A stretch of 64,000 bases of DNA, taken from positions 365,179 through 429,178 of the forward strand of contig NW_027192215.1 in NCBI RefSeq assembly GCF_041956535.1. Direction: 5' to 3'. Both the position numbers and the translations under genes were made by a program. Position 1 is the first letter of the stretch. Each line of letters starts with the position of its first letter. The stretch comes from Calcarisporiella thermophila CBS 279.70 (taxonomy: Eukaryota > Fungi > Calcarisporiellomycota). Shown here piece after piece: positions 8,529-54,653 of the stretch. The notes beneath the pieces are model-generated. The model saw only the letters and a list, made by a program, of their open reading frames with translations. It was not told where the DNA came from and did not search any database.

Positions 8529-11500
8529 ATGACTATTAACGAAGTTACTCTTCAAGACAAAAAGAGCAAAGCTAGTCAAGTTTTGACTAATATTGTTGGT
8601 GGTATCAAGCCCCGGGAAGTGGAAGATATATACCCAGCTACCCCCTTGCAAACAAGCTTTATCACGGCTCTTGCTCACGACCCTCAATCCCACTTGATGC
8701 AAACGGTTTATGAGATCGAAGGTGATTTTGATATATCTCGATTGAAGTCCGCTTGGCATAAAGTCGCAGCTGCAAATACCATTCTGCGTACGGCTTTTGT
8801 CTCGACTCAAGAAGGCGTGTTTCAGGTGGTGCTTAAGTCACCACAAGATGTTTTTGAACGATATATGGAATAGAATGAAGAGGATGTTCATGAACTCCAG
8901 GAGAATTATTTGATATCTGATCGTCGCCGCGGATTCCGTGTGGATGCAACTGCGTTTATAAGGCTTGGGGTTGTCCATATAAAAGGAAAGAACCGTTATA
9001 GGCTCTTCTGGACGATACATCATTCTGTTATGGATAGAGTGTCATTTTTTGTGGCAATTAGCGATACGCTGCAAACATATTTAAGTGGAAGTGTGAAGTC
9101 TCGAACACCATTCAAAACACACGTTGAGTCCATCTTATCAGCCAATTTTACTGAAGCAAGAGATTATTGGAAGGCCGTCTTCGCAGGTGCCACAGTCCCT
9201 GAGAAGCTGAATTTTTCCGACGGCAACACAGAACTCGAGGGATCAGGCATGCTCATGCAAACTTATAATCTAGATGTTTCAATGGATGCAGTGCGGCGCT
9301 ACTGTAACCAAACCGGTCTTATCCAGTCAAACTTTCTACAAGCCATTTGGGCCATAGTTTTGCGACATTATACACGTAGTGATGATGTGATCTTTGGATG
9401 TGTTGCCACGGATGAAAATGCCAGCGATTCTTTAAGGTTTGATCAATATATATAACAATTGCATCACAAACCTTGTGGTTTGTGGCTGGAGCCCCTTTTT
9501 TCGGTTAGATTATTAATATGCTTATAATTTTAGATCAATTGGTGTGCTTGGGAATATAATACCAGTCCGGGTCGTGCTAAAAGATTCGATGACAATGTCA
9601 GAGCTTGCGCTGGCTATGCAAAATTATCATAGGGCCTCACTTCCTTACAGCCATGTTCCGCTTGCTGATATCAAGCGTTGGACAGGTTTGCCTTGGATGC
9701 AGGAGATGTTCCCAACTCTATTTGATTTCCAACAAATCGGCGCTCAACAAATTGCGTTCGAAAGCATCGGGAATGGATTTAAAATTACTAAATTAGATAG
9801 TTACGAGTCCAGGAAATATTCCATATCACTTAATATAAAATCAACATCAACATACTTAAGTGCAGATATCTTATTCAGTTCTGCCATAGTCGGTTACGAC
9901 GTCATTAGTAGGATGATATCCAAGTTCAATGAGGTGCTGGGAATAGTATTGAACACATCTGCAGATTCGATTCCAACACTAAGTGATCTCGATTCACTTA
10001 CTTCAACTGATATTTCATTTATTTCAAAAATAAGTCACGGAAAGCACACCCCATTAGTCTATCAATGTCTTCACCATGGATTTGAGATCAATGCTATCAA
10101 ACAACCTCATGCCATTGCTGTCGAGGAACTCACAGGAGTTACCATTACTTATGGCGACTTGGATGCGCGCGCCAATGCCCTAGCCCATGAACTGAGAAGG
10201 GAGGGTGTAGCTCCTGGAAGCAGAGTTGGTCTCGTCATCAAGAGATCGATCGAGATGCTTGTCGGTATCCTTGCTATCCTTAAAGCTGGAGGCGCTTATG
10301 TGCCAATTGATGCCGCATTTCCAAGAGATCGTATAGAGTATATTCTGAGCGATGCAGGCTGTGATATTGTAGTCACAATGAGGAGAGCAATTAGTTCATC
10401 CATTCAGAAGGAGTCGCGTAAAATCATGCTGATAGATGATTATATGCAGCAGCTACAAGGCGAAGTTACAAAACCCGAGGATTTAAGCACAAGTGATGAC
10501 ACGGCTTTTGTGGTTTACACCTCCGGAACTACAGGCAAGCCAAAAGGAGTTCCAATTCATCATGGGGGAGCTATGAATTGCGTGCAGGATCTCCTCAGCA
10601 AGAATGGATCAGGGCCAGGAGTAGCACAAGCGCAATTCATGGCGGTAGGGTTCGATGGTGCAGTTTCAGAGATTTTTCCGTGCCTGACAAATGGCGGAAA
10701 GTTAATCCTTCGGTCTGGAGAGGATGTGCTTGAGTCATTAAAGAAAGTACAGTCGCTAATGATAACTCCGAGTGGCCTACAGCATATCAATCCAGAGAGC
10801 GTTCCAAATCTACAAGTCGTTATACTAGTTGGTGAACCGGTTCCTCAAGTATTGGCTGAACATTGGTTGCCTCACGTGAAAATCTTTAATGGATACGGTC
10901 CTACGGAAACAAGTCTAGGTACTAGCGTGCAGGAGCTTAAACATGGGCAAAGAGTGGGAGTAGGACGTCCATTTAACAACGTATCATACTATGTGTTGGA
11001 CCATAACCTCAAGATGGTTCCATTGGGAGTCCCAGGAGAACTCTATATCGGAGGCCCTGGTGTTGCAAAGGGATATGTTAATCGACCAGATCTTACCGAA
11101 GAGCGCTTCATCGATAATCCATTCTCTGCAGGAACCAAAATGTACCGAACTGGCGATTTAGTACGCTGGAACTCGGAAGGCAATCTTGAGATAATGGGAC
11201 GAATAGATGATCAAGTGAAACTGAAGGGATATCGTATTGAGCTTGGTGAAGTAGCCTCCGCCATGAATGCATATGTCGGGGTAGATGCAGCCGTGGCTGT
11301 AGTCAAGGACAACGCACTCATTGGATTTGTCACTCCTGATCATGTGGATGTCGAAGCTCTGCGAGATTCTTTGTTCGAGTTTCTTCCCGAGTATATGGTG
11401 CCCGCTACCATTGTGGCTCTGGAGAAGTTCCCCTTGACAACCAATGGAAAAGTTGACAAAGCGAAGCTGAAGGAGATTCCACTTCAACAAGCTGATAGCC

Positions 11501-12519
11501 AGCAGCTACCGGCTACCGACAAGCAGAAGCTGGTTGTCAATCTGATGGCGTCAGTTCTCAACATTGATGCAAGCACAATTGATATAAATACATCATTCTT
11601 TGCTCTTGGTGGCGACTCTGTCTCTGCTATAGCGTTTGTAACGGTACTCCGCAGACATGGTCTTCATATTTCAATTAAACAATTATATAAAACACCAACA
11701 CCTGCGAGACTGGTGGCTGAACCCACGTCTAATACCGCGGATAACTCGGATATAGTTGTCAACCATAATCCTACCATCAATACTAATCCGGTATCCGGAA
11801 AATCTCTTCGTATTGTCTGTCTTCACGGATCAAATATGAGCGGGAAGATCATGAAGCTCAAGATGGCGCCGCTAGAAAAGACACTTGGTTCTGCAGTTAA
11901 TTTTATCTACATAGATGCCTGTTACGAGTCGTCCTCCGACTGTACTTATCGAAAATACTCATTATATAATTCCATGATCTAACTTTCTTAATTTATACAT
12001 ATAGTTGCTCAAGAAGTGAAGAGATATTACGACAGCTCCGTCTTATCATGGACTCCGGCTGAACCGCCTCAGAGTAAGCAGGTTGAACGTGCGGTCTTCC
12101 ACATCCTCTCGATTTTGTCCTTCATTGGAAAGGTGGACGGTCTCTTAGGATTCTGCGAAGGATCCCGGATCGTTGAGCTATTGGATAGATTGGCACAAAG
12201 TGGAGAGATTAAACGACAGTGGGACTTCAGTGTTCATATATCTGGTGTCCTTCTCAATCCGTCTCCTACGTTTGATCTTCTACCACCCAAATTGGCAAAT
12301 CCTGACACTTGCCCCACTATATCGATTCCTTCTGCTCACTGCATGAGCCCCAACGACAAGTTTTATCCAATTAACTTGAAAATTCAAGGGCGATATAATC
12401 CAGAATTGAGCTTGACACTGGAACACGACAGCGGGCACTCAATTCCTCAAACACCAGGGCCTGTCAATGCCTTGGGATCACTAATACTGGAGACTGCAAA
12501 AAAGTGCCAAAAATTCTAA
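8529..12519 (+). CDS. Monomodular NRPS, C-A-T-(FSH1/LovG-like alpha/beta hydrolase); in-frame TAG at 8871-8873 (possible pseudogene or recoded gene)
   Basis: C domain: EDIYPATPLQ, ILRTAF, HHSVMDR, IGVLGNIIPVRV. A domain: YTSGTTGKPKG, NGYGPTE, GELYIGGPGVAKGY, YRTGD, GRIDDQVKLKGYRIELGE, NGKVDK. T domain: FFALGGDSV. C-terminal domain: LRIVCLHG...FIYIDA...GLLGFCEG...D...HDSGHSIP. Introns 9437-9533 and 11942-12004 restore the frame. ORFs 8520-8873 and 8910-9455 share one frame across a single TAG. Confidence 0.93.
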
Positions 12520-36334: not shown

Positions 36335-38628
36335 CTAGAGAGAGTATCCCTTTTTAACCTTCTCACATTTGGCGGGTAGTTTNNNNNNNNNNNNNNNNNN
36401 NNNNNNNNNNNNNNNNNNNNNNNNNNNNNNNNNNNNNNNNNNNNNNNNNNNNNNNNNNNNNNNNNNNNNNNNNNNNNNNNNNNNNNNNNNNNNNNNNNNN
36501 NNNNNNNNNNNNNNNNNNNNNNNNNNNNNNNNNNNNNNNNNNNNNNNNNNNNNNNNNNNNNNNNNNNNNNNNNNNNNNNNNNNNNNNNNNNNNNNNNNNN
36601 NNNNNNNNNNNNNNNNNNNNNNNNNNNNNNNNNNNNNNNNNNNNNNNNNNNNNNNNNNNNNNNNNNNNNNNNNNNNNNNNNNNNNNNNNNNNNNNNNNNN
36701 NNNNNNNNNNNNNNNNNNNNNNNNNNNNNNNNNNNNNNNNNNNNNNNNNNNNNNNNNNNNNNNNNNNNNNNNNNNNNNNNNNNNNNNNNTAAACCGAACC
36801 TTTTGGATGCGGTCCTTCATATCCAGGTTCATCCATGGTGCCATATGTCTCTGGGTTGGTCGTTTTGCTTGTAGAGTAGAGGTAATTGTGAATATTTTCT
36901 CCATAAGCGTAACTTCCCATTGAGAACTCGGCATTACGATTGTGATTGGATTTGACTCGTAATATAGTTGCAAAAAAGTCCCCCCAGCCTTCTCCCATCC
37001 CTTAGTAGGCGAGAAAGTATAGTTAAAAAATTATATAAAATAAACGAGGCATTGTTCTTTTCCAAAGAAAAACAAAACCTTCAGCTTCACCCCATGACAG
37101 GCAGTTTGCATTGTTGGGGCCTCCTGTGAGACGAGTGCTGATGCCGTGAGAATACTCATGAACAATAATGCCAGAGTCCAAATCGCCATCCCGTCTGGGA
37201 TTCGCGGAAGTCCACAAAAACATTTGGATAGTGGGTTTCTGGCCATCAGGAGTTGTCCAGAAGTAGGCATTATTGGTTTCACTTCCGTCTTGAGCAAAGG
37301 CAATCACTGCATCACTTGCTTTACCTCCCTTTCCGAAATTATCTTCTTGGAAATTTCCAGCAACCTGAATGGGTTTAAGAAAAATGAAAAGGAACTAAAT
37401 TCTGGCAAACGCCATCATAAATTCACGAGAAACTAACCTCATTGAATCCATAGCGGTAAAACAGGTCGTGCATCTATTGAAAATATATTGGGTCAATACT
37501 GTGCTCTTCAATCATAATAGTGATATTATTACACACTGTGTTAGTCCAATAAAACAAATTCGTGATCGAGGCATTGAGATAGGTCTTTGGTACTTTGGTG
37601 AGATCCAGCGGAAAGTCGAACACCTTATTCTCTCCCCCAGACGGCCGGAATTTGTCCTGCCATTTCTGTAGGTTAGTGTCGCCCCTTAAATTCTCCTGAG
37701 CATAAACATTGTTGCTCAGTGTGGCTCTGGAATTCTGTGAGTTGCCAGGAAGATGCCAGCCGTTTGGTGATGCGATTTTGTCATGGGGGTCCACGAGTAA
37801 GCTTCGTGACCCCTCAGATGGATCATTTACACCAAGTGGAAAGACCTGATAGACAGCTTCATTAACCCAATCCACCATCGAGATAACATCCCCATTTTGT
37901 GAATCAACATATGCATGAAACCAGTTCAACTTCATTTTTACATCAAGTTCCCAGACAGTATGCAGGCGACGGCCGTTATCTGTGTGCATCAAGACTTTTC
38001 GCACTGGAACCCTGTTGGAGGTAGAAAAAGGGACATTGGAGAGCAATATGGGCCCATTGCCTCGAAGTGCCTCGCCTTCTTCGACCTTGATGCTTTTTGG
38101 ATCGGGAATGTCCAAATTAAGATGTTTCGCAAACGATAGAAGGGCCTGCTTTGGATCAATAATGGGTGCCTTCGGAGCACGGCGACTTAGTTTGTCATTT
38201 GTTTTGGCACCATCCTCAGCTTTTTGAGTAGATTCGCGGTAGAAGGAATTGCCGTAAGAAATAATCTTATTTTTCTTGTCGACATTAATGTTAATGTCTC
38301 CGTTCACCACCTCGAGTCCATCTATGACTTGTCGCAGATAAATGTGCGTAATCCCAGTAATATCGGTGCGATAAGCATCTTTTACCTCGAATTTGGAGCT
38401 GGTCAAGTGCTCACGCGCAAACTGAGTTGCAACAGATTGAGGAGTAGATTTCAGCAGTGTTGCTTGAGAGTTTTGCTGGGACAACTTCAGATCATCGGTC
38501 GTGTAGTTAGTGAAATTGGATAGGTCAGGGCCGAAACTCTTATTGCGAAAGCGACCCAAATTTTTCTCGGCCGAGTAAGCCAAAGACACAAATGAAGCCA
38601 AAAAGAGGGAATTATATATATTTTTCAT
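36335..38628 (-). CDS. Fungalysin (M36) metallopeptidase, copy A; 3' part in assembly gap
   Basis: Signal peptide, FTP propeptide ([22 protein letters not shown]), [38 protein letters not shown]; C-terminus KLPAKC. Gap at 36383-36789. Confidence 0.93.
36383..36789. other. Assembly gap (407 N) inside fungalysin A; further gaps at 41302-41985, 50875-50894 and 53378-54180
   Basis: Runs of N. ORF-track entries spanning them are artefacts. Confidence 0.99.
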
Positions 38629-40083
38629 CGTTGTTTATTGGGTTGTGTAGTAAGATAGGTTAAGGAGCGTAGGAGTCTGTGAAATTATATAAATAAGGGG
38701 TAAGATAGTGAAAGAGGTAGGAGAACGATATTTGAGAATTTATATATGTCAAGAGCAAACACAATTAGATAATAATGTGATCAAACACATCCCTTATGGC
38801 GATATTATAGTTGAAGTGATTTTCATTGAGTATTAGTCACAGACGATCCCTCGACGTTCACGGGAAGTGACAAATAATCTAAGCACTCATTCTTCGGCAT
38901 CTCCATTTCGATATACTGTTGCAGAGTTCAAAAAAATGATCAGAAACATCTCAGTTTACGACCTTGCACCAGAGAATTCGTTTGCTTGTCAACAACTTCA
39001 TCAAACCTCCACGTTTCCCTGATGCGCGAAGAGATAATTGTTGAATTGAACGATATTAATATGCACATAATTTAATGGTTAGCGAAGTAAGGGTTTATTT
39101 TTGCACACGATTCTGTAAAATTGTTCAATTTTGATGTGTTCATATTAGACATCTTTTATGTAATATCGCTTGTTTTCAGAAATAATGCGACACAATTAAT
39201 ACTAGATCATAATACTTGCATCACCTAAGAGTTTGATATTTTTGTGAAGCTCTTGTATGATGAAATTTGCTAATACTGTTGATATTCCTAGTATTGTGCT
39301 CGTCAGCTGAGGTGTGCAACAAACGACATTGAAGAAGGCAGCGAACCTAAATATTGTATTCCAATCCAATTTTGAAAATTAGAATTGTGATCTCCAGAGC
39401 ACCATATGAATCACAGTTGTGTCAAATTTACAATATAATGTCCGCAACGAATTCTACAATTAAGCTCAAGCGATTGGCATAAGTTGACACTGCCAAATTA
39501 TCTTATTGCAATCAGTGAAATCCTTGTTTTACTAAGGCAAATGCACCGGAGCTTAAAGAAGCTCTATTATTAGGGGCAATGTTTGAGTGAGTTTTGGATT
39601 AATTATAAAATAGTTAACCGTTTTCTATTCTTCTATTATAATAGCTAATATATTAAAAATTTTATATAGAAATAGCAAACAAATACAGTACATCAAATCT
39701 TTAACAGTACACCTTGACCTGATTGCCAATTTTGTAGTCCGCCCTCTAGCTTTTACCAACTGAATATATTATTATTAATCAAATATGCAAAAAGGAACAC
39801 ATTTGATATGATCGTCAGTTACCTATTCCAAATAATTCTTTCCTAATTCATCTCGTCTCGCCCACTAATACATCCGTTTGTTATCACAAAATGTTGATAT
39901 ATCCTGGGGAAAGCTTTGAAATTAGCCCCATGTGATTAATTTTATCGGGGATAATTATGATGTCGTGAATAGATTAAAATTGAGTGCCTTAACGTATCAT
40001 TAATTTAGGACGTTTCCCCTGTTTACGCTTTTAAACTCTCCAAACTTCTTAAAATCCTGAAAACTCCTACGATATCACTCACT

Positions 40084-40776
40084 ATGCTTCATCGAACCTT
40101 TCATTTATTATTTTTGTCCATCCTTTTTTTATTCATTGCGACCACTTTTGCTGAAGAGCCTTGTCCGCTCGGAGCGGATCCAGAAACGTATATCGATGAT
40201 ATGAAAAAATGTTCTTTTGAACAAATCTATCAACTGTTTCTCAGCTTAGACGCTGGTCCGATACCTGACTATGGTGAGAGGGTTGACTTTGAATATATCA
40301 AGCTGTGCCGGTCATCGGAATGCAAAGGCCTTGATAAATTCCTAGTCATGTTTCTGAAGTTCATTGAGTTTCTTGGCGCCAAAGGTGCGAAATGGTTTAA
40401 TCCGGGGGTGATATTTTACACAGGCCCTAAAGGTGGTACTGTGATAAATCGATTTTTTGGAAAGCTTGATAAAAAATTCGTTAAGGGATCAGTACAATAT
40501 TATGAATATCCCGCCGATGGAAAAGAAGCGATTACACTTCGTTGGAAGATGCCTATAATTCGATCGCATGTACTCGATATTATGCGCACCATATCACCGG
40601 GTCATTACCTTGGAATGACACTTGCGCCTGAAAAACCAACTCCTGGTGCTTTCTGGCTCGGAAGAAGCGATAAGAGTGAAGAAACAGTAGAAGCAGAGGA
40701 AGAAGAGGAGGAGGAAGAAGAGGACGTTGAGGGGAAGGAGGAAGAAGGAGAAAAGGAGAGCAAAAAGGAAGTGTAG
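40084..40776 (+). CDS. Intronless secreted hypothetical protein with acidic C-terminal tail
   Basis: 230-aa ORF with a signal peptide ending TFA|EE, a globular core (LFLSLDAGPIP...DGKEAITL...LDIMRTISPGHYLG) and an E/K-rich tail. Confidence 0.85.
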   Translation: MLHRTFHLLFLSILFLFIATTFAEEPCPLGADPETYIDDMKKCSFEQIYQLFLSLDAGPIPDYGERVDFEYIKLCRSSECKGLDKFLVMFLKFIEFLGAKGAKWFNPGVIFYTGPKGGTVINRFFGKLDKKFVKGSVQYYEYPADGKEAITLRWKMPIIRSHVLDIMRTISPGHYLGMTLAPEKPTPGAFWLGRSDKSEETVEAEEEEEEEEEDVEGKEEEGEKESKKEV

Positions 40777-41231
40777 TTTAAATTATTTCTTGGACCGATG
40801 TAGAATGCACTATTAACATTAGAAAATTAAAAATACTCTTAACTCTATTTGATTCACCTTTGTGCTAAAATCGATCTGTGCAATTTCAATATTTACATTT
40901 ATATTCTCGGTACACTTTGCACCATCTTTAGATACACCAGAATCTAAGATAGAATAGATGGCACAGTACAATAATTTCTGAGCTTCGTTTTTCACATTCA
41001 CACATTTCAATGCTAATATGATTTCAAGGGGTAGCCCATGCGATTGAGTTACCAAGCATTTCAAATAATGTGTATTATCTCCGGGATAGTTCAGGTCGCT
41101 ATATAAACCACGATATTAACATTATAAAGAATTGCTAATACAGTTTTCATTAGGCATTGATATAGAGTAGATGATACTAATAAAATTAAGTCATACAACA
41201 AGTATGTTTACTTGTAGACCAGGAAAAAAAA

Positions 41232-43871
41232 TTAAGTAGATCTATTAGGATGCTTGGAGGCTCTTTGCTTTGATTTGTTTTCACATTTTTTTGGCAGCTT
41301 GNNNNNNNNNNNNNNNNNNNNNNNNNNNNNNNNNNNNNNNNNNNNNNNNNNNNNNNNNNNNNNNNNNNNNNNNNNNNNNNNNNNNNNNNNNNNNNNNNNN
41401 NNNNNNNNNNNNNNNNNNNNNNNNNNNNNNNNNNNNNNNNNNNNNNNNNNNNNNNNNNNNNNNNNNNNNNNNNNNNNNNNNNNNNNNNNNNNNNNNNNNN
41501 NNNNNNNNNNNNNNNNNNNNNNNNNNNNNNNNNNNNNNNNNNNNNNNNNNNNNNNNNNNNNNNNNNNNNNNNNNNNNNNNNNNNNNNNNNNNNNNNNNNN
41601 NNNNNNNNNNNNNNNNNNNNNNNNNNNNNNNNNNNNNNNNNNNNNNNNNNNNNNNNNNNNNNNNNNNNNNNNNNNNNNNNNNNNNNNNNNNNNNNNNNNN
41701 NNNNNNNNNNNNNNNNNNNNNNNNNNNNNNNNNNNNNNNNNNNNNNNNNNNNNNNNNNNNNNNNNNNNNNNNNNNNNNNNNNNNNNNNNNNNNNNNNNNN
41801 NNNNNNNNNNNNNNNNNNNNNNNNNNNNNNNNNNNNNNNNNNNNNNNNNNNNNNNNNNNNNNNNNNNNNNNNNNNNNNNNNNNNNNNNNNNNNNNNNNNN
41901 NNNNNNNNNNNNNNNNNNNNNNNNNNNNNNNNNNNNNNNNNNNNNNNNNNNNNNNNNNNNNNNNNNNNNNNNNNNNNNNNNNNNNAGACCTCTCCCATGT
42001 CATGTGCTTCTTTAAACTCATCCATGCTGGAATAAGTTTCAGGATTGCTTTTTTTACTTGTTGAATAGGGATATCTGCGAATGCCACTCCCAAACAAATA
42101 TTCTCCTATTACAAATTCGGCGCTGCGATCGTGGCTAGATTTGACGCGGAGTATAGTTGCAAAAAAGTCCCCCCATCCCTCTCCCATCCCTAACGTAGCG
42201 GCAAAAGAAGTAAAATATTAAAAATTTACATCCTTCATTAAAATCAATGATATTTTTTTTGTACCTTCAGCTTCACCCCACGACAAACAATTTACATTGG
42301 ACGGACCGCCAGTAAGGCGATTGCTGATACCATGAGTGAATTCGTGGACAATGATTCCTGCGTCCAAATCTCCGTCTCGTTTTGGATTATTGCTTGTTCC
42401 CAAATGCATTTGCATTGTTGGATGCTTGCCATCCACGGGTGTTCCGAAATATGCATTATCGGTATCACTTCCATCTTGTGCATAAGCAAGTACTGCATCC
42501 CCTTCCTTGCCACCTTTTTCGAAATTGTCATCTTGGAAATTACCCGATACCTTATCAAATAGTGAACCGGCAGTAGGTAATAGTGAGAGGGCCAATTTAG
42601 TTTTTACCAATTTATAATTAAAAATTTTACAAATACGCTACCTCATTGAATCCATAACGATAGAAAAGGTCATGAACCTGTTTTAGGTTAGATAGTATTC
42701 ATCAATATCAAATCAATAGTGTGAGAAGTATTTCATAAGACTATGGAATGAATAAAGGAGTACTGTTACTTACGATATTGTTCCAATAGAACAAATTTGT
42801 TATCGAGGCATTCAAATAAGCCTTGGGTTCTTTGGTCAAATCGAGCGGGAAATCATACACGTTGTCCTTACCCACCGTTGGTCGGAATTTATTCCCCCAC
42901 CTCTGTAGATTGCTATCGCCCTTAAGATTCTCCTGAGCATAGACATTGTTTCCCATTGTAGTTCTAGAGTGTTCGGCGCCCTCTTTAAAATGCCAGCCAT
43001 TGGGTGAAGAGATTTTGTCTTGGGGATCAGCCAGCAGCTTTCGAGAGCCCTCAGACGGATCTGTAGTACCAAATGGAAACACTCGGTAGGCTGCTTCACT
43101 TATCCAGTCCAAGATTGATACTACTTCTCCGGTATGAGCGTCAATGTAAGCTTGGAACCAATTGAGTTTCATTTGTACGTCGAGCTCCCATACGGTTTTA
43201 AGTTTTCGACCATTTTCTGTATGAATCAAAACCTTCCTCACGGGGACTTTCTTGTCGGACGTCGCAAAGGGTACGTTAGAAAGGATGATAGGCCCATTGC
43301 CTCGAAGCGAAGCACCTCTCTCAATCTCAATGCTTTTCGGATCGACAATATCCAATTTTAGATATTTTGCAAATGACAATAGAGCATCCTTTGGGTCAAT
43401 AGATGTAGCAGTAGGCGCACGGCGTCTTAACTTGGAGTCACCCTTAGTTTTTTCTCCAGAGATAGGGTCCTCTTCGCGGAAGAAGGAATTGCCATAGGAG
43501 ATGACTTTATTCTTTTTATCCACATTGATATTGATATCTCCGTTGACAACCTCGAGTCCGTCAATGATTTGGCGTAGATAAACGTGCGTGATTCCGTTGA
43601 GGTCAGTGCGATAGGCGTCTTTCACAACGAATTCTGAGCCAGTGAGATGTTCATGCGCAAATTGAGCTGCCGCCTTCTGAGGGGTTTGTTTCCTAAGAAA
43701 CGACTGAGAGAGCCCTTGGGGTATCTTATAGGGGTCGGTTGTATAGTTTAGGAAGTTTGTTAGATCAGGCCCAAAACTTTTGTTGCGAATGCGACCATTA
43801 TTGTTCTTGGCGGAAGCCACCAAGTTAACAAACAAGGCCAAAGAAATACAGAAATATAGAGCGGTTTTCAT
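41232..43871 (-). CDS. Fungalysin (M36) metallopeptidase, copy B; 3' part in assembly gap
   Basis: Same architecture as copy A, with HEFTHGISNRLTGG and MGEGWGD. After the gap (41302-41985) it reads KLPKKCENKSKQRASKHPNRST*. Confidence 0.93.
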
Positions 43872-45543
43872 AAGGTAACTAATATAATGAGAGGAGGGAC
43901 ACTAAGGAGTGGATGAGTTATGATAATTGTCGGAAAGAAAGAATTAGCGATGGAAGTGAAGGTATAAGCAATTTGGCTTAGTATTTATCTATGTTTACGA
44001 AGATAAGCACAATTAGATAATTTTAAGCTTGTGCGCTCTTTGGTATATCAATTTCGAATACAGTGTTTTTTCATTTGGCGATCCCATGACCATGTAAAGC
44101 TGGCAAGGAAATTTTCTACTCTCTAGTAGCTTTGAATAGGTTACGCGAACAAATTTGTCTTACGCGTGGACGGTATGGTCAACCTTACCTCAACTATTGG
44201 TGAATTTGTATTGTGACATTGTGACTGTATAACTTAATTCATCTCCGATCTTTTTTCATTGTATATACATTCTGTTTGCTTGGCAATATGACAACTCAAA
44301 GACTGAATTACAATGAAAATAGAGATTCTGATATGACGAAATGCTGATTTCTAATGAGAATATCGAAGAGTCGTGTAAGCGTTACTGTCACACTAGAGGA
44401 AACTCGTCAATTAAGGATTAGGAATCTAAAATTGTAAAAAAATACCTTCGCCATATCATGTTTTACTACGCATTCAGTCTTATTATAAATCCTATTAACC
44501 TTGTTATTTCATAAACTATATACTTTTTACTAGTATATCCGCTCTAGTGATTATCAACGGCACTAAAATATTCCGCAGAGTTCCTAAGGATTGCATTTGC
44601 GCAATGTAAGCAGAAAAATGGATAACTTTCATTTTTATGGAATCCTTTAAAGCAACTCCATAAACATTTTGAAGTTCAATTGAATGGATAAGGTAAAGCG
44701 GGTTTCATGATTTGTATGAATCTAAACATGCAGTGAGAAGGAGATTTTCGAGCAAAAGCTGCAAATATTTAACAAACTCTGTAGGTAATAACAAATCTGT
44801 GATACATTTTTTATTAGAATATCGATGGTATAAATCATTTACTAAGATTAAGTGGCTAATGCTTAAGAATATAATATATTATTCATTTATATGGTTTTTA
44901 TTGCTCAAGACAAGTGAATATTAAATACTAATCTACCTCTGGCTCTTGATGTAACTTTGATTACATTTAAATACATACAATATATTAGCTATAGATAAAA
45001 TTCCAAAAAATAAAAATTATAAAGCTCTGAGATAAAGATTCCCTAATATACCCTTAACATAAAGTTTACTTAACATAACAATAGAATGATATATAATCAG
45101 AAAAATTCTACCAATTCCTATGCCATTTTTATTTTGCAGCTTTGACTAATATTTATTAAAGTTGCTTACTTGGTAGGATATAATCTGATAGCGCTTAGTA
45201 AATATATGCCACCGTAGAATTTGATAAATGCACATTGGCTGCTAAGCTTTGCTCTCAATCTGAGTCATTAAGATTTACATGAAATTGAAGTGAGCCAAAC
45301 GAACTCGCTGTACTATCTCCATATTACATACTATCCCTTGGAACTTAATACGAAAGCAAGTAGATTACCAGTACAATATCAGGAGATATAAAAATTTATG
45401 TCTTGATTCCTAGGCCTTTCGTTCCATTATTCTTAAAAACATTTACTTTATTAAATGAATCTCCACATCATACAAGACCGTATGAATACAATTACGTAGA
45501 AAATAAAAAGGAGTATTATTATCGAAAATATTTAAGTAGCGTA

Positions 45544-47955
45544 TTACGTTGAAATACCCTCACATTTCTTGGGCACTTCAAAGTTCTCTTGTCGTTTTCC
45601 TGATCCATCTGTATTCTGCTCAATAAGTTTAGCATTTACACCGAGGCCACGTTTGGCGAAACCTCGCCAAATTTCACACTCGTTTGCTCCATTAGTGAGG
45701 AGCTTATCTGCTTGAATGATAGCATCACGAGCGTTGATGAAAGTGGGCAGGCAGGGTTGGAGTTTCATACCATCAACCACAAGTTGCAAAATCAACGTAT
45801 TGCCGAATTTAAGGATATGTTCGCGGACCTCCTTTTCGTTCGTCGATAGCGGAGGGAACCATTTTTCAGTAAAGCCATGCTTTTCGACGAAATTCCAGAA
45901 AACTGCGATTAAAAATTAAGGGTGAGAAGTTTACCGAGAATGAACATGCAATATGTTTGATAATCGCATTAGGTGAAAGTGAATTTACCTTCATAGAGAA
46001 TATTTGCCCAGACAGCCCCCTTAGCATGTGGTCCCTTGTATCCACTCTTATCCATGATTCCATATGTCTCAGGATTGGTGGTTTTGCTTGTGGAATAGGG
46101 ATATTTACGGATGCCTTTCTTAAATAGATATTCTCCCATGACAAACTCAGTCTTGCGATCTTGATTAGGTTTAACACGAAGTATAGTGGCAAAAAAGTCG
46201 CCCCATCCCTCGCCCATTCCTAGAAACAAAAGAAATTAGTGTGATAATAAAAAACATTTTACGTAACTAACTGGAAGAAAGTATAAAAGTAGAAGGTATC
46301 TCCATAGTATTCGATAACATAGCGAACAGTTACCTTTAGCTTCGCCCCATGTCAAACAATTTACATTGGAGGGTCCTCCGGTCAGACGATTACTGATTCC
46401 ATGTGAGTATTCGTGTACAATGATACCAGAGTCCAAATCTCCATCACGTTGCGGATTCGTGGCCGTCCCCAAGAACATTTGCATTGTGGGCTTCTTGCCA
46501 TCGGCAGTGGACCAAAAGTATGCATTATCAGAATCCGATCCGTCTTGAGCAAAGGCGATTACTGCATCACCTCCCTTGCCACCTTTTTCGAAATTGTCCT
46601 CTTGAAAATTACCAGAAACCTTACGAAGAGTTGAAGAAAGGAAAAGAGGTAAACAGAATGTCAGAAAAATAATACATTACGGTGCCAGGTGACGGTTTAT
46701 AAGCTATTGATTTGAATTACCTCGTTAAAACCATATCGGTAGAAGAGATCGTGTATCTGTAGTAATATGGAGAAAATTATTGGAATTTTGACTTTATATA
46801 CAGCATATTCGATAATTGAGCTTGTTAAGTGAGATCAAGATTTAGATAATTTACCACATTATTCCAGTAAAACAGATTGGTAATCGAGGCATTCAAATAA
46901 GCCTTGGGCTCTTTGGCCAAATCGAGCGGAAAATCATATACATTGTTCTTACCCCCCGAAGGCCGAAACTTACCCTCCCACCCCTGTAGGTCGCTATCAC
47001 CCTTGAGATTCTCCTGAGCATAAACGTTATTTCCCATCGTAGTACCAGAGTATTCTGCACCCTCCTTAAAATGCCAGCCATTAGGCGAGGAGATTTTATC
47101 ATGCGGGTCAGTAAGCAACTTTCGAGGGCCTATTGATGGGTCATTCGTACCGAATGGGAACACTTGGTAGGCCGCATCACTCACTCTATCCGAGATTGCA
47201 ATTACTTCTCCTGATTGTGCGTCAATGTGAGCTTGGAACCAATTGAGTTTCATTTTGACGTCGAGTTCCCAAACGGTTTTAAGTTCGCGACCCTGATTCG
47301 TATGAATCAATGCCTTTAGCACTGGAACTTTGTTGTCAGAGGTTGAAAAGGGTACATTAGAAAGAAGTATTCGACCCTCTCCTCTAAGGGAATCGCTCTT
47401 TTCAATTTTGATGCTCTTTGGATCCGGAATCTCTAATTTCAGATGCTTTGCAAAAGATAGGAGAGCCTGCTTTGGGTCGATAGTAGGAGTAGCAAGCGCG
47501 CGGCGTCTTATTTTCGTTTTAGTGTTGTCACCATCTCCAGTGGGTGGTTGATTCTTCTCACGGAAAAAAGTGTTGCCATAAGAGACGATCTTATTATTTT
47601 TATCCACATTGATATTGATATCTCCGTTAACCACTTCGAGTCCCTCGATGATTTGTCGCAAGTAGACATGTGTGACTCCGTTAAGATCCGTGTGATAGAC
47701 ATCTTTCACTAAGAATTCGGACCCTGTAAGGTGCTCCCGCGCAAATTGAGTTGCCACTTTTTGAGGTGTTTGTTTCTTTAAGAATGTTCGAGCTCGTCCC
47801 TGTTGTATCTTTAATGGATCAGTTGTAAAATTAAGAAAGTTGGATAGATCAGGGCCAAACGTTTGCTCGTGGATGCGGCCATTTTTATCCTTGGCGGATG
47901 CCACGAGGGTCGCAACCGAGGCCAATATTACACATATAAAAATGATATTCTTCAT
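45544..47955 (-). CDS. Fungalysin (M36) metallopeptidase, copy C (complete)
   Basis: [73 protein letters not shown]. Confidence 0.95.
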
Positions 47956-50845: not shown

Positions 50846-53800
50846 CCCTTTAGGCATCGTGCCCAAGGTTGTCTNNNNNNNNNNNNNNNNNNNNCCCTGG
50901 ATGGTATCTGCTCCTTCGGAGCCCAAATCGTGCTTTATTCATAGTTACAGAAAATAATAATAAAACATAAAAAAGTATAAAATTGAAGTAAAATATTAGT
51001 CAAATTTTTCCAAATTGCTGTTTTTAGAAGTAATTGTAAAAAGTAATAATACTGAAAACAAAGTTATTTAAAAACAGTGTCTGCTCTGCCAAGAGCTGGA
51101 GCACTATGACGGTCCAAGAGGGGGTAAGAATACAATTCGAAAAATTACCACCCGAGGAGCCAGTAAGTCAATTTCACCTATCCAACCACGACCTACAGGC
51201 ATTAGACAAAGCAGTGGAAGAATTCTTAAAAGACGACGTCATAGAGAAAGCGAGTCCAAAAGCAAATGGCTTCCTATCCAATCTTTTTCCAAAGCGAGAA
51301 AAGACAAAAATACGGCCACTCCTGGACCTACGACGGATAAACCGATACATACAGTACCAACATTTCAAGATGGAAAGATTACCAACCATACGAGACATGA
51401 TCCAACCGGGAGACTACCTGATCAAGGTCAATCTGAGCAATGCATACCTAACAATACCGGTTCACCCGAAGAGCAGACCATATCTCTCGTTCAAACATCA
51501 AGGGGAGACGTACTCGTTCAAAGCGATGCCGTTCGGCTAGCTTCAGCTCCACGCATTTTCTCGAAACTAATGAAGGATGTATTAGAGCCATTAAGGAAAC
51601 AGGGTCTTCGCCTAACGTATTACCTCGACGACATCTGTTTAATGAATCAATCAGAAGCCCAAGCAAAGAATCAAGCACGGCTACTGATAGAGCATCTCCA
51701 AGCACTCGGCTTTATAATCAACGAAAAGAAATCGGAATTGAAGCCGAAGAAGCAACAGATATTCCTGGGGTTCGAAATCAACACAGAAACCATGGATATC
51801 AAGCTCCCAAAAGAAAAAATCGCGCGAATCAGACAAGATATAAAATCCGCAAAGGCAAAACCGAGGACAGCGAGGCAAATAGCGTCACTAGCTGGACTTT
51901 TAGCATCGACAGCACCCGCAGTGAGGCCAGCGTTCATCTTTCAACGGCACTTACAAAGAGACCTCGCAAAGCACCTTCAAAGAACCAATCAAGGATGGGA
52001 GAAGGTGATACCACTCTCAAAAGAAACGATAGAAGATTTGAAGAAGTGGGAAAACCTCCTAGACGTTCACAAGGGCTTACAAGTAAGAATTTCACCGCCG
52101 GACGAAACAGTGAACATAATGACAGGCGCATCAGGAACAGGATGGGGGATAGTGAGCATGCACCTAACAACACATGGCCGATGGACAGACCAAGAGAGAA
52201 AAACATCATCGAACCAGAAAGAGCTGCGGGCTATCCTCTTCGCTTTAAAGCTCCACACCAAACACTGGGAGAACAAACACATAAGGATCAAGACAGACAA
52301 CAAAACAGCTGTGGCCTATATCCAAAACCAGGGGGGTACGGTGAGTTTACCGTTAGTAGACATAGCCACAGAGATATGGGAAATCTGCTTGAGACACAAT
52401 ATTCAAATAACAGCAGAATACCTCCCAGGCAAACAAAACGCAGAGGCAGACAGGGAGAGCCGCCGGAAATCATCCCAACACGAATGGCAACTACCGGAAG
52501 AAGCATGGAGATTCATCAACAGGAACTGGGGAGAGAGAACAATAGATCTCTTTGCTTCACGCAACAACACGAAGCACCCACGATTCTTCAGTATGAAGCC
52601 AGACCCAGACGCCGAGGTAATCAGTGCCCTCTCGTAAAGATGGCCAACCAAAGGAGCCTACGCCAACCCACCGTGGATTCTACTCCCCAGAATTCTCAGA
52701 GAGATTTCGCTAAGAGAACTGGAAGAGATAGTGGTGATAACCCCCAACTGGACGACACAACCATGGATAGCACAAGCCCTAAATCTGACTATCCAACAAC
52801 CAGTTATCCTAGATCTTCAACACCTGAACTCACCAAGAGCACTCCCACGACACCCAGCACAGGTAATCGCATGGAAATTATCAGGCATGCATTCGAAACA
52901 CAGAGAGTTTTGGAGAAAGCAATTGAGATCATCTCCAAGAGAGAAAGGGCAACTACTGGGAAGCATCACAATTCAGCGTGGGAAAAACCCACATCATGGT
53001 ACAAAACGAATGATAGAGATACATGCGAGAACAACTTGCCTACGACCTCAATGTTTCTTACAGAAATAACACCACTAGAAGATACAGAACCATGTCCCGT
53101 GGGAGCAGCGCACCTATACATACCTCAAGCACAAGAGACTTCAATCGATTATTATGACTTTCTGACTTTTTTTACCACAACCCGCAAAACCCCAACTCCT
53201 GCAACTGGGGATACGATAACAAGATGGATCACAGAAATGCTGCCTGAATGCGGCACCCTAGCAACGGCCCACTCAACCAGAAGCACCACACCATCTCACG
53301 TGTTAGTACAAGGCGCTCCATTGGAAGCTATACTCGAAGCAGAGATAACTTTACGACGAAACACCATCCAGGGAGACNNNNNNNNNNNNNNNNNNNNNNN
53401 NNNNNNNNNNNNNNNNNNNNNNNNNNNNNNNNNNNNNNNNNNNNNNNNNNNNNNNNNNNNNNNNNNNNNNNNNNNNNNNNNNNNNNNNNNNNNNNNNNNN
53501 NNNNNNNNNNNNNNNNNNNNNNNNNNNNNNNNNNNNNNNNNNNNNNNNNNNNNNNNNNNNNNNNNNNNNNNNNNNNNNNNNNNNNNNNNNNNNNNNNNNN
53601 NNNNNNNNNNNNNNNNNNNNNNNNNNNNNNNNNNNNNNNNNNNNNNNNNNNNNNNNNNNNNNNNNNNNNNNNNNNNNNNNNNNNNNNNNNNNNNNNNNNN
53701 NNNNNNNNNNNNNNNNNNNNNNNNNNNNNNNNNNNNNNNNNNNNNNNNNNNNNNNNNNNNNNNNNNNNNNNNNNNNNNNNNNNNNNNNNNNNNNNNNNNN

Positions 53801-54211
53801 NNNNNNNNNNNNNNNNNNNNNNNNNNNNNNNNNNNNNNNNNNNNNNNNNNNNNNNNNNNNNNNNNNNNNNNNNNNNNNNNNNNNNNNNNNNNNNNNNNNN
53901 NNNNNNNNNNNNNNNNNNNNNNNNNNNNNNNNNNNNNNNNNNNNNNNNNNNNNNNNNNNNNNNNNNNNNNNNNNNNNNNNNNNNNNNNNNNNNNNNNNNN
54001 NNNNNNNNNNNNNNNNNNNNNNNNNNNNNNNNNNNNNNNNNNNNNNNNNNNNNNNNNNNNNNNNNNNNNNNNNNNNNNNNNNNNNNNNNNNNNNNNNNNN
54101 NNNNNNNNNNNNNNNNNNNNNNNNNNNNNNNNNNNNNNNNNNNNNNNNNNNNNNNNNNNNNNNNNNNNNNNNNNNNNNNNCTTCGTTCCCCTTGGGCTCT
54201 CGCCCAAAGGG
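50846..54211 (+). mobile_element. Degenerate DIRS-type tyrosine-recombinase retrotransposon (RT, RNase H, adenine MTase-like domain, YR remnant; gag absent)
   Basis: RPLLDLRRIN, HFKME, AYLTIP, MPFG/(L)ASAPRIF (1-nt deletion near 51537), YLDD. RNase H: SSNQKEL...TDNKTAVAYI...GG...LPGKQNAEADRESR. MTase: IDLFAS...AYANPPW. Overlapping frame carries CPV and AHSTRS. Inverted terminal matches at 50895-50905/53363-53373 and 50846-50868/54190-54211. Confidence 0.92.
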
Positions 54212-54653
54212 AAATAGAAGGATTAAGTTCTTCTTCTTGGACTCGAGTACTCAATATTAATTCATATATTGGTTAAATCTTCACGTAGAAGAAAGTCCTG
54301 AACTCTTTTTCATAAGCCTATATTCCTAAGCCATTTTGCTCAAGATGGCGCATAATCTAGGCGCAAGTAGGAGATACAATACATTTACATGTAGCTATCT
54401 TTACAAATAAAGGTGGGTCTTGAAATAAGAATTCATATTAATCATCTTTTCATTATGAAAATATCATATACAAAATAATTTTGATAGTAAGAAACAACCG
54501 TCCCACAAGATTTACAACAAAAGAGAAAGCTGCAAATGCACTTTTTGTTCTAACGTTTATAAACATTAAATAAAATTACAGGTAAAATTGGGAAATAAAA
54601 TAGGAAGCGGTGTTAAAAAGTCCATATGAGTTCCGCTTCTATTTTATGATCAC

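Follow-up and report, generated by a model that had tools for sequence, protein, structure and literature searches.

The question raised by this locus is how a fungal NRPS that ends in an FSH1/OVCA2-type alpha/beta hydrolase would release its product, and what part would be played by the cysteine that stands at the nucleophile elbow of that domain. The locus lies in the Calcarisporiella thermophila sequence analysed here, a stretch of 64,000 nucleotides referred to as the window, and corresponds to VTP21DRAFT_6150 of the public annotation. Its domain order is that of a C-A-T-FSH1 NRPS. The pieces of the gene were searched and folded exon by exon, not as a joined spliced protein. Its features, in window positions, are as follows.

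8529..9436, + strand: exon 1, with the start codon and the N-terminal part of the condensation (C) domain, without an upstream module; Pfam PF00668 matches on either side of the TAG
8871..8873, + strand: in-frame TAG, where 9 of 9 paralogous C domains/modules have Trp TGG
9018..9038, + strand: C-domain active-site HHxxxDG motif, with Arg for Gly (DR, not DG); Gly in 9 of 9 paralogous modules
9437..9533, + strand: predicted intron 1, 97 nt, phase 2, 31% GC; paralogues are interrupted at about the same place
10081..11451, + strand: adenylation (A) domain, core motifs intact; PF00501 (E 3.5e-75) and PF13193
11530..11718, + strand: thiolation (T) domain, Ser at 11617-11619; PF00550 (E 2.9e-14)
11800..11941, + strand: N-terminal part of FSH1 (first strand, LHG oxyanion loop), in frame with T; PF03959 (E 1.8e-6)
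11942..12004, + strand: predicted intron 2, 63 nt, phase 1, within FSH1; 22% GC, CTAAC branch-like site
12005..12519, + strand: C-terminal FSH1 exon, with the entire triad and the stop TAA at 12517-12519; PF03959 (E 4.1e-9)
12154..12156, + strand: Cys TGC of the nucleophile elbow GFCEG, in the alignment column of the FSH1 GxSxG serine
12355..12357, + strand: triad Asp, invariant in six paralogues, after strand 109-113 of the exon model
12436..12438, + strand: triad His, invariant in 27 fused-clade sequences

The hydrolase motifs are all in one frame (LRIVCLHG at 11806-11829, FIYIDA at 11902-11919), and a single uninterrupted open frame covers the T domain and the first strand of FSH1. Paralogue C37 runs from the end of its T domain through FSH1 to the stop without an intron. 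Together these support a fusion in cis of the hydrolase behind the T domain, across a single predicted intron, as an earlier note on this DNA had read it. The position of intron 2 is identical in the public model, and the site is common to paralogues C2 and C6 and to Geranomyces, Polyrhizophydium, Zopfochytrium and Dinochytrium; it is missing in C37. An alternative donor at 11921, which is also in phase, was rejected. It would cut aligned residues, while 11942 agrees with the paralogues and the public model.

Both hydrolase exons of the window match the FSH1 profile PF03959, with 28.2 and 36.9 bits against a curated cut-off of 21, and match no further Pfam family beyond it, and the whole FSH1 domains of the Cys paralogues score 73.7 and 67.7 bits. 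The Thioesterase profile PF00975, proposed in the earlier note as the comparison, has no match to the window pieces or to the Cys paralogue domains. For an intact Cys paralogue, the AlphaFold2 model of the complete FSH1 domain has a pLDDT of 95.7, and its best match in the PDB is yeast FSH1 (1YCD), with a Z of 22.8 versus 18.6 for the runner-up. No NRPS thioesterase (TE) structure is found among the top 50 fold matches. The model of the last window exon (pLDDT 88.6) likewise has 1YCD as its top PDB match. A phmmer search of this exon (exon 3) against the PDB gave no match; a profile search did find 1YCD. Word-index searches for homologues, with exon 3 and with the FSH1 alignment, yielded nothing informative.

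The exon model places the Cys in a turn that follows strand 43-49 and precedes helix 51-64, and the Asp and His after the last two strands. In a profile alignment with 1YCD, the columns of the window Cys, Asp and His coincide with the Ser, Asp and His motifs of FSH1. On this alignment and the topology of the predicted structure, Cys-Asp-His fill the triad slots of the FSH1 fold. The FSH1/OVCA2 layout, the motif positions and the Cys with retained Asp and His that had been read from the letters are thus all borne out. Having Cys in place of the serine in GxSxG by which FSH1/OVCA2 is recognised, the window domain is a Cys variant of this family and not strictly a serine hydrolase.

Yeast FSH1 (1YCD) and human OVCA2, the latter with a demonstrated Ser-His-Asp triad (PMC7077851), agree with the window domain in fold, in the order of the motifs and in the positions of the triad. 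They are, however, free-standing esterases with a conserved GFSQG, whereas the window domain is fused and has Cys. LovG belongs to PF03959. The LovG-type PKS thioesterases are likewise alpha/beta hydrolases that release a carrier-bound chain (LovG role as cited in PMC10512364). They are separate, trans-acting proteins that act on polyketides, unlike the NRPS-fused window domain; LovG is set apart here by description only. Dienelactone hydrolase shares with the window domain the GxCxG elbow and the alpha/beta hydrolase fold. Its profile PF01738 has no match up to E 0.5 to the window pieces or the paralogue domains, its fold ranks 25-39 as against rank 1 for FSH1, and in the tree the domain falls among FSH1 sequences that have Ser.

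In place of an open frame and a complete HHxxxDG motif, as expected in an intact monomodular C-A-T NRPS, the window gene has the TAG at 8871-8873 and the Gly-to-Arg change. The C domain is about 50-57% identical to internal C domains of the paralogues, and the start of the gene corresponds to a point inside an internal C domain of the multimodular paralogues. No NRPS remnant is present across the 8.5 kb upstream of this start. The public model bypasses the TAG through a 75-nt 'intron' at 8799-8873, which has an exon-like GC content of 43% and whose removal loses 25 conserved codons. A second 75-nt in-frame intron of this model, at about 9805-9879, also cuts conserved codons. Since conserved codons are deleted, both are probably prediction artefacts, one of them concealing the TAG. 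Recoding of TAG was rejected, as TAG terminates the C52 gene and is therefore a normal stop in the C. thermophila genome.

The TAG at a position where Trp is invariant, the damage to the C-domain motif and the lack of upstream modules make it probable that the window copy is either a pseudogene of recent origin or a remnant of the A-T-FSH1 type. On balance it appears to be a recently inactivated, 5'-truncated paralogue. It is also possible, with appreciably less likelihood, that the TAG stems from an error in sequencing or is read past, and that a functional C-A-T-FSH1 or A-T-FSH1 protein handles a single amino acid or a short acyl-amino acid, both loading and releasing it. The gene has a single stop and zero frameshifts in about 1,270 codons. 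Its A, T and FSH1 domains have no more disrupted invariant columns than those of the paralogues; in the A domain, 4 of 95 and 0 of 68 such columns are altered, which is within the paralogue range. A functional gene would nevertheless have to accommodate another lesion within this C domain, the missing donor module, an annotated skip intron that is exon-like and a TAG that elsewhere ends the C52 gene. Relaxation confined to the C domain would also fit the sequence. The monomodular C-A-T-FSH1 layout, proposed earlier as a class, looks here like that of a 5'-truncated copy with a stop; the family is mostly multimodular. The window copy being probably inactivated, the functional Cys enzymes are more likely to be C2 and C52. 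Owing to its TAG, the window locus is the weakest representative of the Cys-type fused FSH1, with C2 and C52 as the better cases.

There are six NRPS-FSH1 copies in the C. thermophila genome, including that of the window, and two decayed endings. In all six the FSH1 ending directly follows a T domain. The nucleophile codon is TGC (Cys) in the window copy, C2 and C52, and AGC in C3 and AGT in C6 and C37 (Ser); these three Cys and three Ser versions have 44-61% identity. A Cys-type copy terminates an NRPS of 5,540 residues with four A domains, and the Ser copies C3 and C6 both end T-T-FSH1 (L022:7123-9075 and L024:4637-9181). In C52, Ala replaces the Gly of the oxyanion loop. The paralogue loci contain stretches of N. 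The two decayed NRPS-FSH1 endings (L007, G000:C2:1439802; L008, G000:C8:1048935) have stops, and L007, which has lost the elbow, is an example of genuine decay in the family. The genome also has an FSH1 that stands free and gives three matches to TE domains. A related NRPS on C5 (L125:2691-4490) ends, by its motifs, in a reductase-like domain and not in FSH1. From these endings the NRPS family seems to swap release domains, which is consistent with FSH1 occupying the release slot.

Homologues were sought among 1.84 billion representatives, which gave 63 matches, many of them long NRPSs, for a query that biased the search towards Cys. All 19 named records from outside Calcarisporiella are chytrids, of 12 genera, and all have Ser. 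Many of these chytrid FSH1 domains terminate NRPSs of 1,500-6,600 residues. In the tree, the Calcarisporiella domains form one clade with the fused domains of chytrids (support 100/98), and the free FSH1 of the same genome lies outside this clade. The fusion itself is not new. Bushley and Turgeon (2010) described the Batrachochytrium dendrobatidis NRPS BDEG_03514.1 as T-C-T-A-T followed by FSH1 (PMC2823734), and a dinoflagellate PKS/NRPS hybrid also includes FSH1 (PMC8283056). The earlier suggestion of an undescribed class has therefore to be given up for the architecture, which is common in chytrids with Ser. What is new is the Cys variant, in a fungus of the Mucoromycota whose NRPS family is chytrid-like. 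The literature search found no functional study or assay of an NRPS-fused FSH1.

The chytrid NRPSs resemble the window gene in having FSH1 after the last T domain and, in several genera, in sharing the phase-1 intron. They differ in having Ser and often Glu or no clear Asp, where the window domain has Cys-Asp-His. Glu or no clear acid occupies the Asp slot in many of the chytrid fused domains; Asp is retained in Calcarisporiella, Thoreauomyces and Fimicolochytrium. The domains of Fimicolochytrium and Thoreauomyces nest with those of Calcarisporiella (support 95/91). Horizontal transfer from chytrids is not established by this, since the AU test retains chytrid monophyly (p 0.31) and the A-domain identities, of up to 47% with chytrids and 41.5% with Bacillus, do not discriminate. 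In one protein of Globomyces sp. (L034) the T-FSH1 unit is present twice in tandem, as near-identical copies.

The earlier note had set a tabulation of the elbow residue among homologues as a test. Of 60 scorable homologues, from the search biased towards Cys, 56 have Ser and 4 have Cys, and nothing else is found. The four are two Calcarisporiella paralogues, a Logan sequence that belongs to the fused clade, and a free-standing sequence on a long branch. The possibility that the Cys is a private decay mutation of the window copy fails on this evidence, as two paralogues and one outside sequence have it too. The Logan sequence (SRR20314591, L030:131-937) has an independent Cys, encoded by TGT, and is apparently without an in-frame T domain. 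Among distant FSH1 loci, metagenomic or genomic, Cys was found in 0 of 39 distinct matches with a pattern that permits it. The metagenome and GTDB scans returned distant FSH1 relatives only, all with Ser, and a crude scan found NRPS motifs in none of them.

The nucleophile codon is TCN in 10 of 10 outside fused-clade loci with readable DNA, nine of them from named chytrids. The codons therefore form a series of TCN in chytrids (L031-L038, L121, L122), TGC in the Cys copies and AGY in the Ser copies (G000 L022-L026). The domain tree, built from 169 columns with the nucleophile column excluded and moderately supported, is (C52 Cys,((C2 Cys,C37 Ser),(window Cys,(C3 Ser,C6 Ser)))). A clade made up of the Cys copies alone is rejected by the AU test (p 0.00035), and so is one of the Ser copies alone (p 0.003). 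By codon parsimony a Cys ancestor of the family requires 3 single-base steps, a TCN ancestor 4 and an AGY ancestor 5, so that Cys is the parsimonious ancestral state. It is likely, from these sequences, that one Ser-to-Cys change took place in the Calcarisporiella family, was kept in three copies and was followed by two returns to Ser, as AGY. The likely ancestral Cys is ahead by one step of a history in which Cys arose three times independently, with further switches, from a TCN ancestor, and gene conversion might bias this margin.

In the FSH1 exon, dN among the paralogues is 0.30-0.51 while dS is saturated, and the Cys has thus been long maintained in a conserved domain. Its long retention, and the restriction of the elbow to nucleophilic residues, is indirect evidence that the Cys may be catalytic. 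The two returns to Ser mean that it is not indispensable. The idea that a catalytic serine can move between its codon boxes through cysteine is an old one, and such moves are usually deduced where no intermediate survives. The Calcarisporiella family appears to hold such a switch with the intermediate still extant, and would be a clean example of it. A literature search on this switch found no paper.

The best explanation of the fold, family, fusion, triad positions and distribution of residues and codons is likely to be that an FSH1/OVCA2 alpha/beta hydrolase came to serve as the last, chain-releasing domain in an NRPS family of the chytrid type, acting in cis through an acyl-Cys thioester. 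In this explanation the splicing, catalysis, release role and type of product are predicted. The His, oriented by the Asp, would activate the Cys thiol, which by transthioesterification would accept the acyl or peptidyl group carried on the phosphopantetheine arm of the neighbouring T domain. Water, or an amine or hydroxyl of the substrate, would then resolve the acyl-Cys thioester to give a linear or cyclic product. NRPS TEs follow such a two-step route, in which the chain is transferred to the enzyme and then hydrolysed or attacked intramolecularly (PMC11298585), and Cys-His-Asp is an established triad among TEs (PMC11298585, PMC13288461), although Cys-type TEs are rare, at about 2% (PMC13288461). 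The bacterial Cys-TEs ObiF1, SulM, MacB and PmxB have, like the window domain, a Cys-His-Asp triad at the C-terminus of an NRPS, but they belong to a different family, PF00975 having no match in the window domain.

Hydrolysis or cyclisation is likelier for this domain than beta-lactone or beta-lactam chemistry. Release of such a strained ring, as by ObiF and SulM, was suggested in the earlier note from the Cys nucleophile, and the Asp after the penultimate strand is indeed at position II, as in these two enzymes (PMC11298585). Position II is, however, the usual alpha/beta hydrolase arrangement (PMC11298585) and is native to FSH1, and the 50 best structure matches are without an NRPS TE. Other Cys-TEs produce macrocycles, MacB-TE by ordinary macrocyclisation (PMC13288461), and a beta-hydroxy or N-sulfo substrate is unsupported here. 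No tailoring gene is seen adjoining the window gene, which has a DEAD-box helicase upstream. Strained-ring release is on this evidence highly improbable. A substitution of Ser by Cys often reduces esterase activity, which counts for a reading of the Cys domains as attenuated or inactive relics that only bind or edit, with release left to the Ser copies or to free enzymes. The broken window gene and the decayed copies L007 and L008 would suit such relics, as would the free-standing FSH1 and the three TE-domain matches in the genome. Conservation of the Asp, the His and the fold under purifying selection speaks against them, as do the solely nucleophilic residues at the elbow and the Cys domain that ends a 5,540-residue NRPS with four A domains. 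Such a relic state of the Cys domains is unlikely.

The choice of Cys may instead have been selected for an altered outcome, with the Cys copies cyclising or aminolysing and the Ser copies hydrolysing. MacB-TE, which cyclises with its Cys and hydrolyses instead when this is mutated to Ser (PMC13288461), offers an analogy. Cys is rare in FSH1 (0 of 39) yet retained across synonymously saturated paralogues, and tandem T domains are shared by C3 and C6, both Ser copies. On the other side, the changes may be near-neutral and the numbers are small, and C37 has Ser with no tandem T domain evident. Selection for outcome is thus a tentative proposal, less probable than not. The same doubt attaches to its extension to the NRPS-fused FSH1 of early-diverging fungi, in which Cys would mark cyclases or acyl transferases and Ser hydrolases, with the TCN-to-TGC-to-AGY states all extant and active. 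The preferred reading remains cis-acting release through an acyl-Cys thioester.

Product release by chytrid and zygomycete NRPSs is largely unstudied, and fused FSH1 domains stand at the end of NRPSs from about 12 chytrid genera, Batrachochytrium among them. TEs of the Cys type are useful as cyclases. The presence of three Cys and three Ser copies in one genome makes the question of Ser or Cys addressable with small excised domains. Sister genes that keep Cys or have returned to Ser form a natural set for this unstudied fungal peptide release.

The surroundings of the window NRPS show no adjoining biosynthetic cluster or tailoring genes. The nearest identified upstream gene is the DEAD-box helicase, at 1716-2975. 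Further along, on the - strand at 37474-47955, at least three genes that resemble those of secreted metallopeptidases (by eye, fungalysin/M36-like) stand in tandem, in an array broken by N gaps. At 51106-54276, reverse transcriptase and RNase H-like frames in overlapping ORFs resemble a DIRS-type retroelement.
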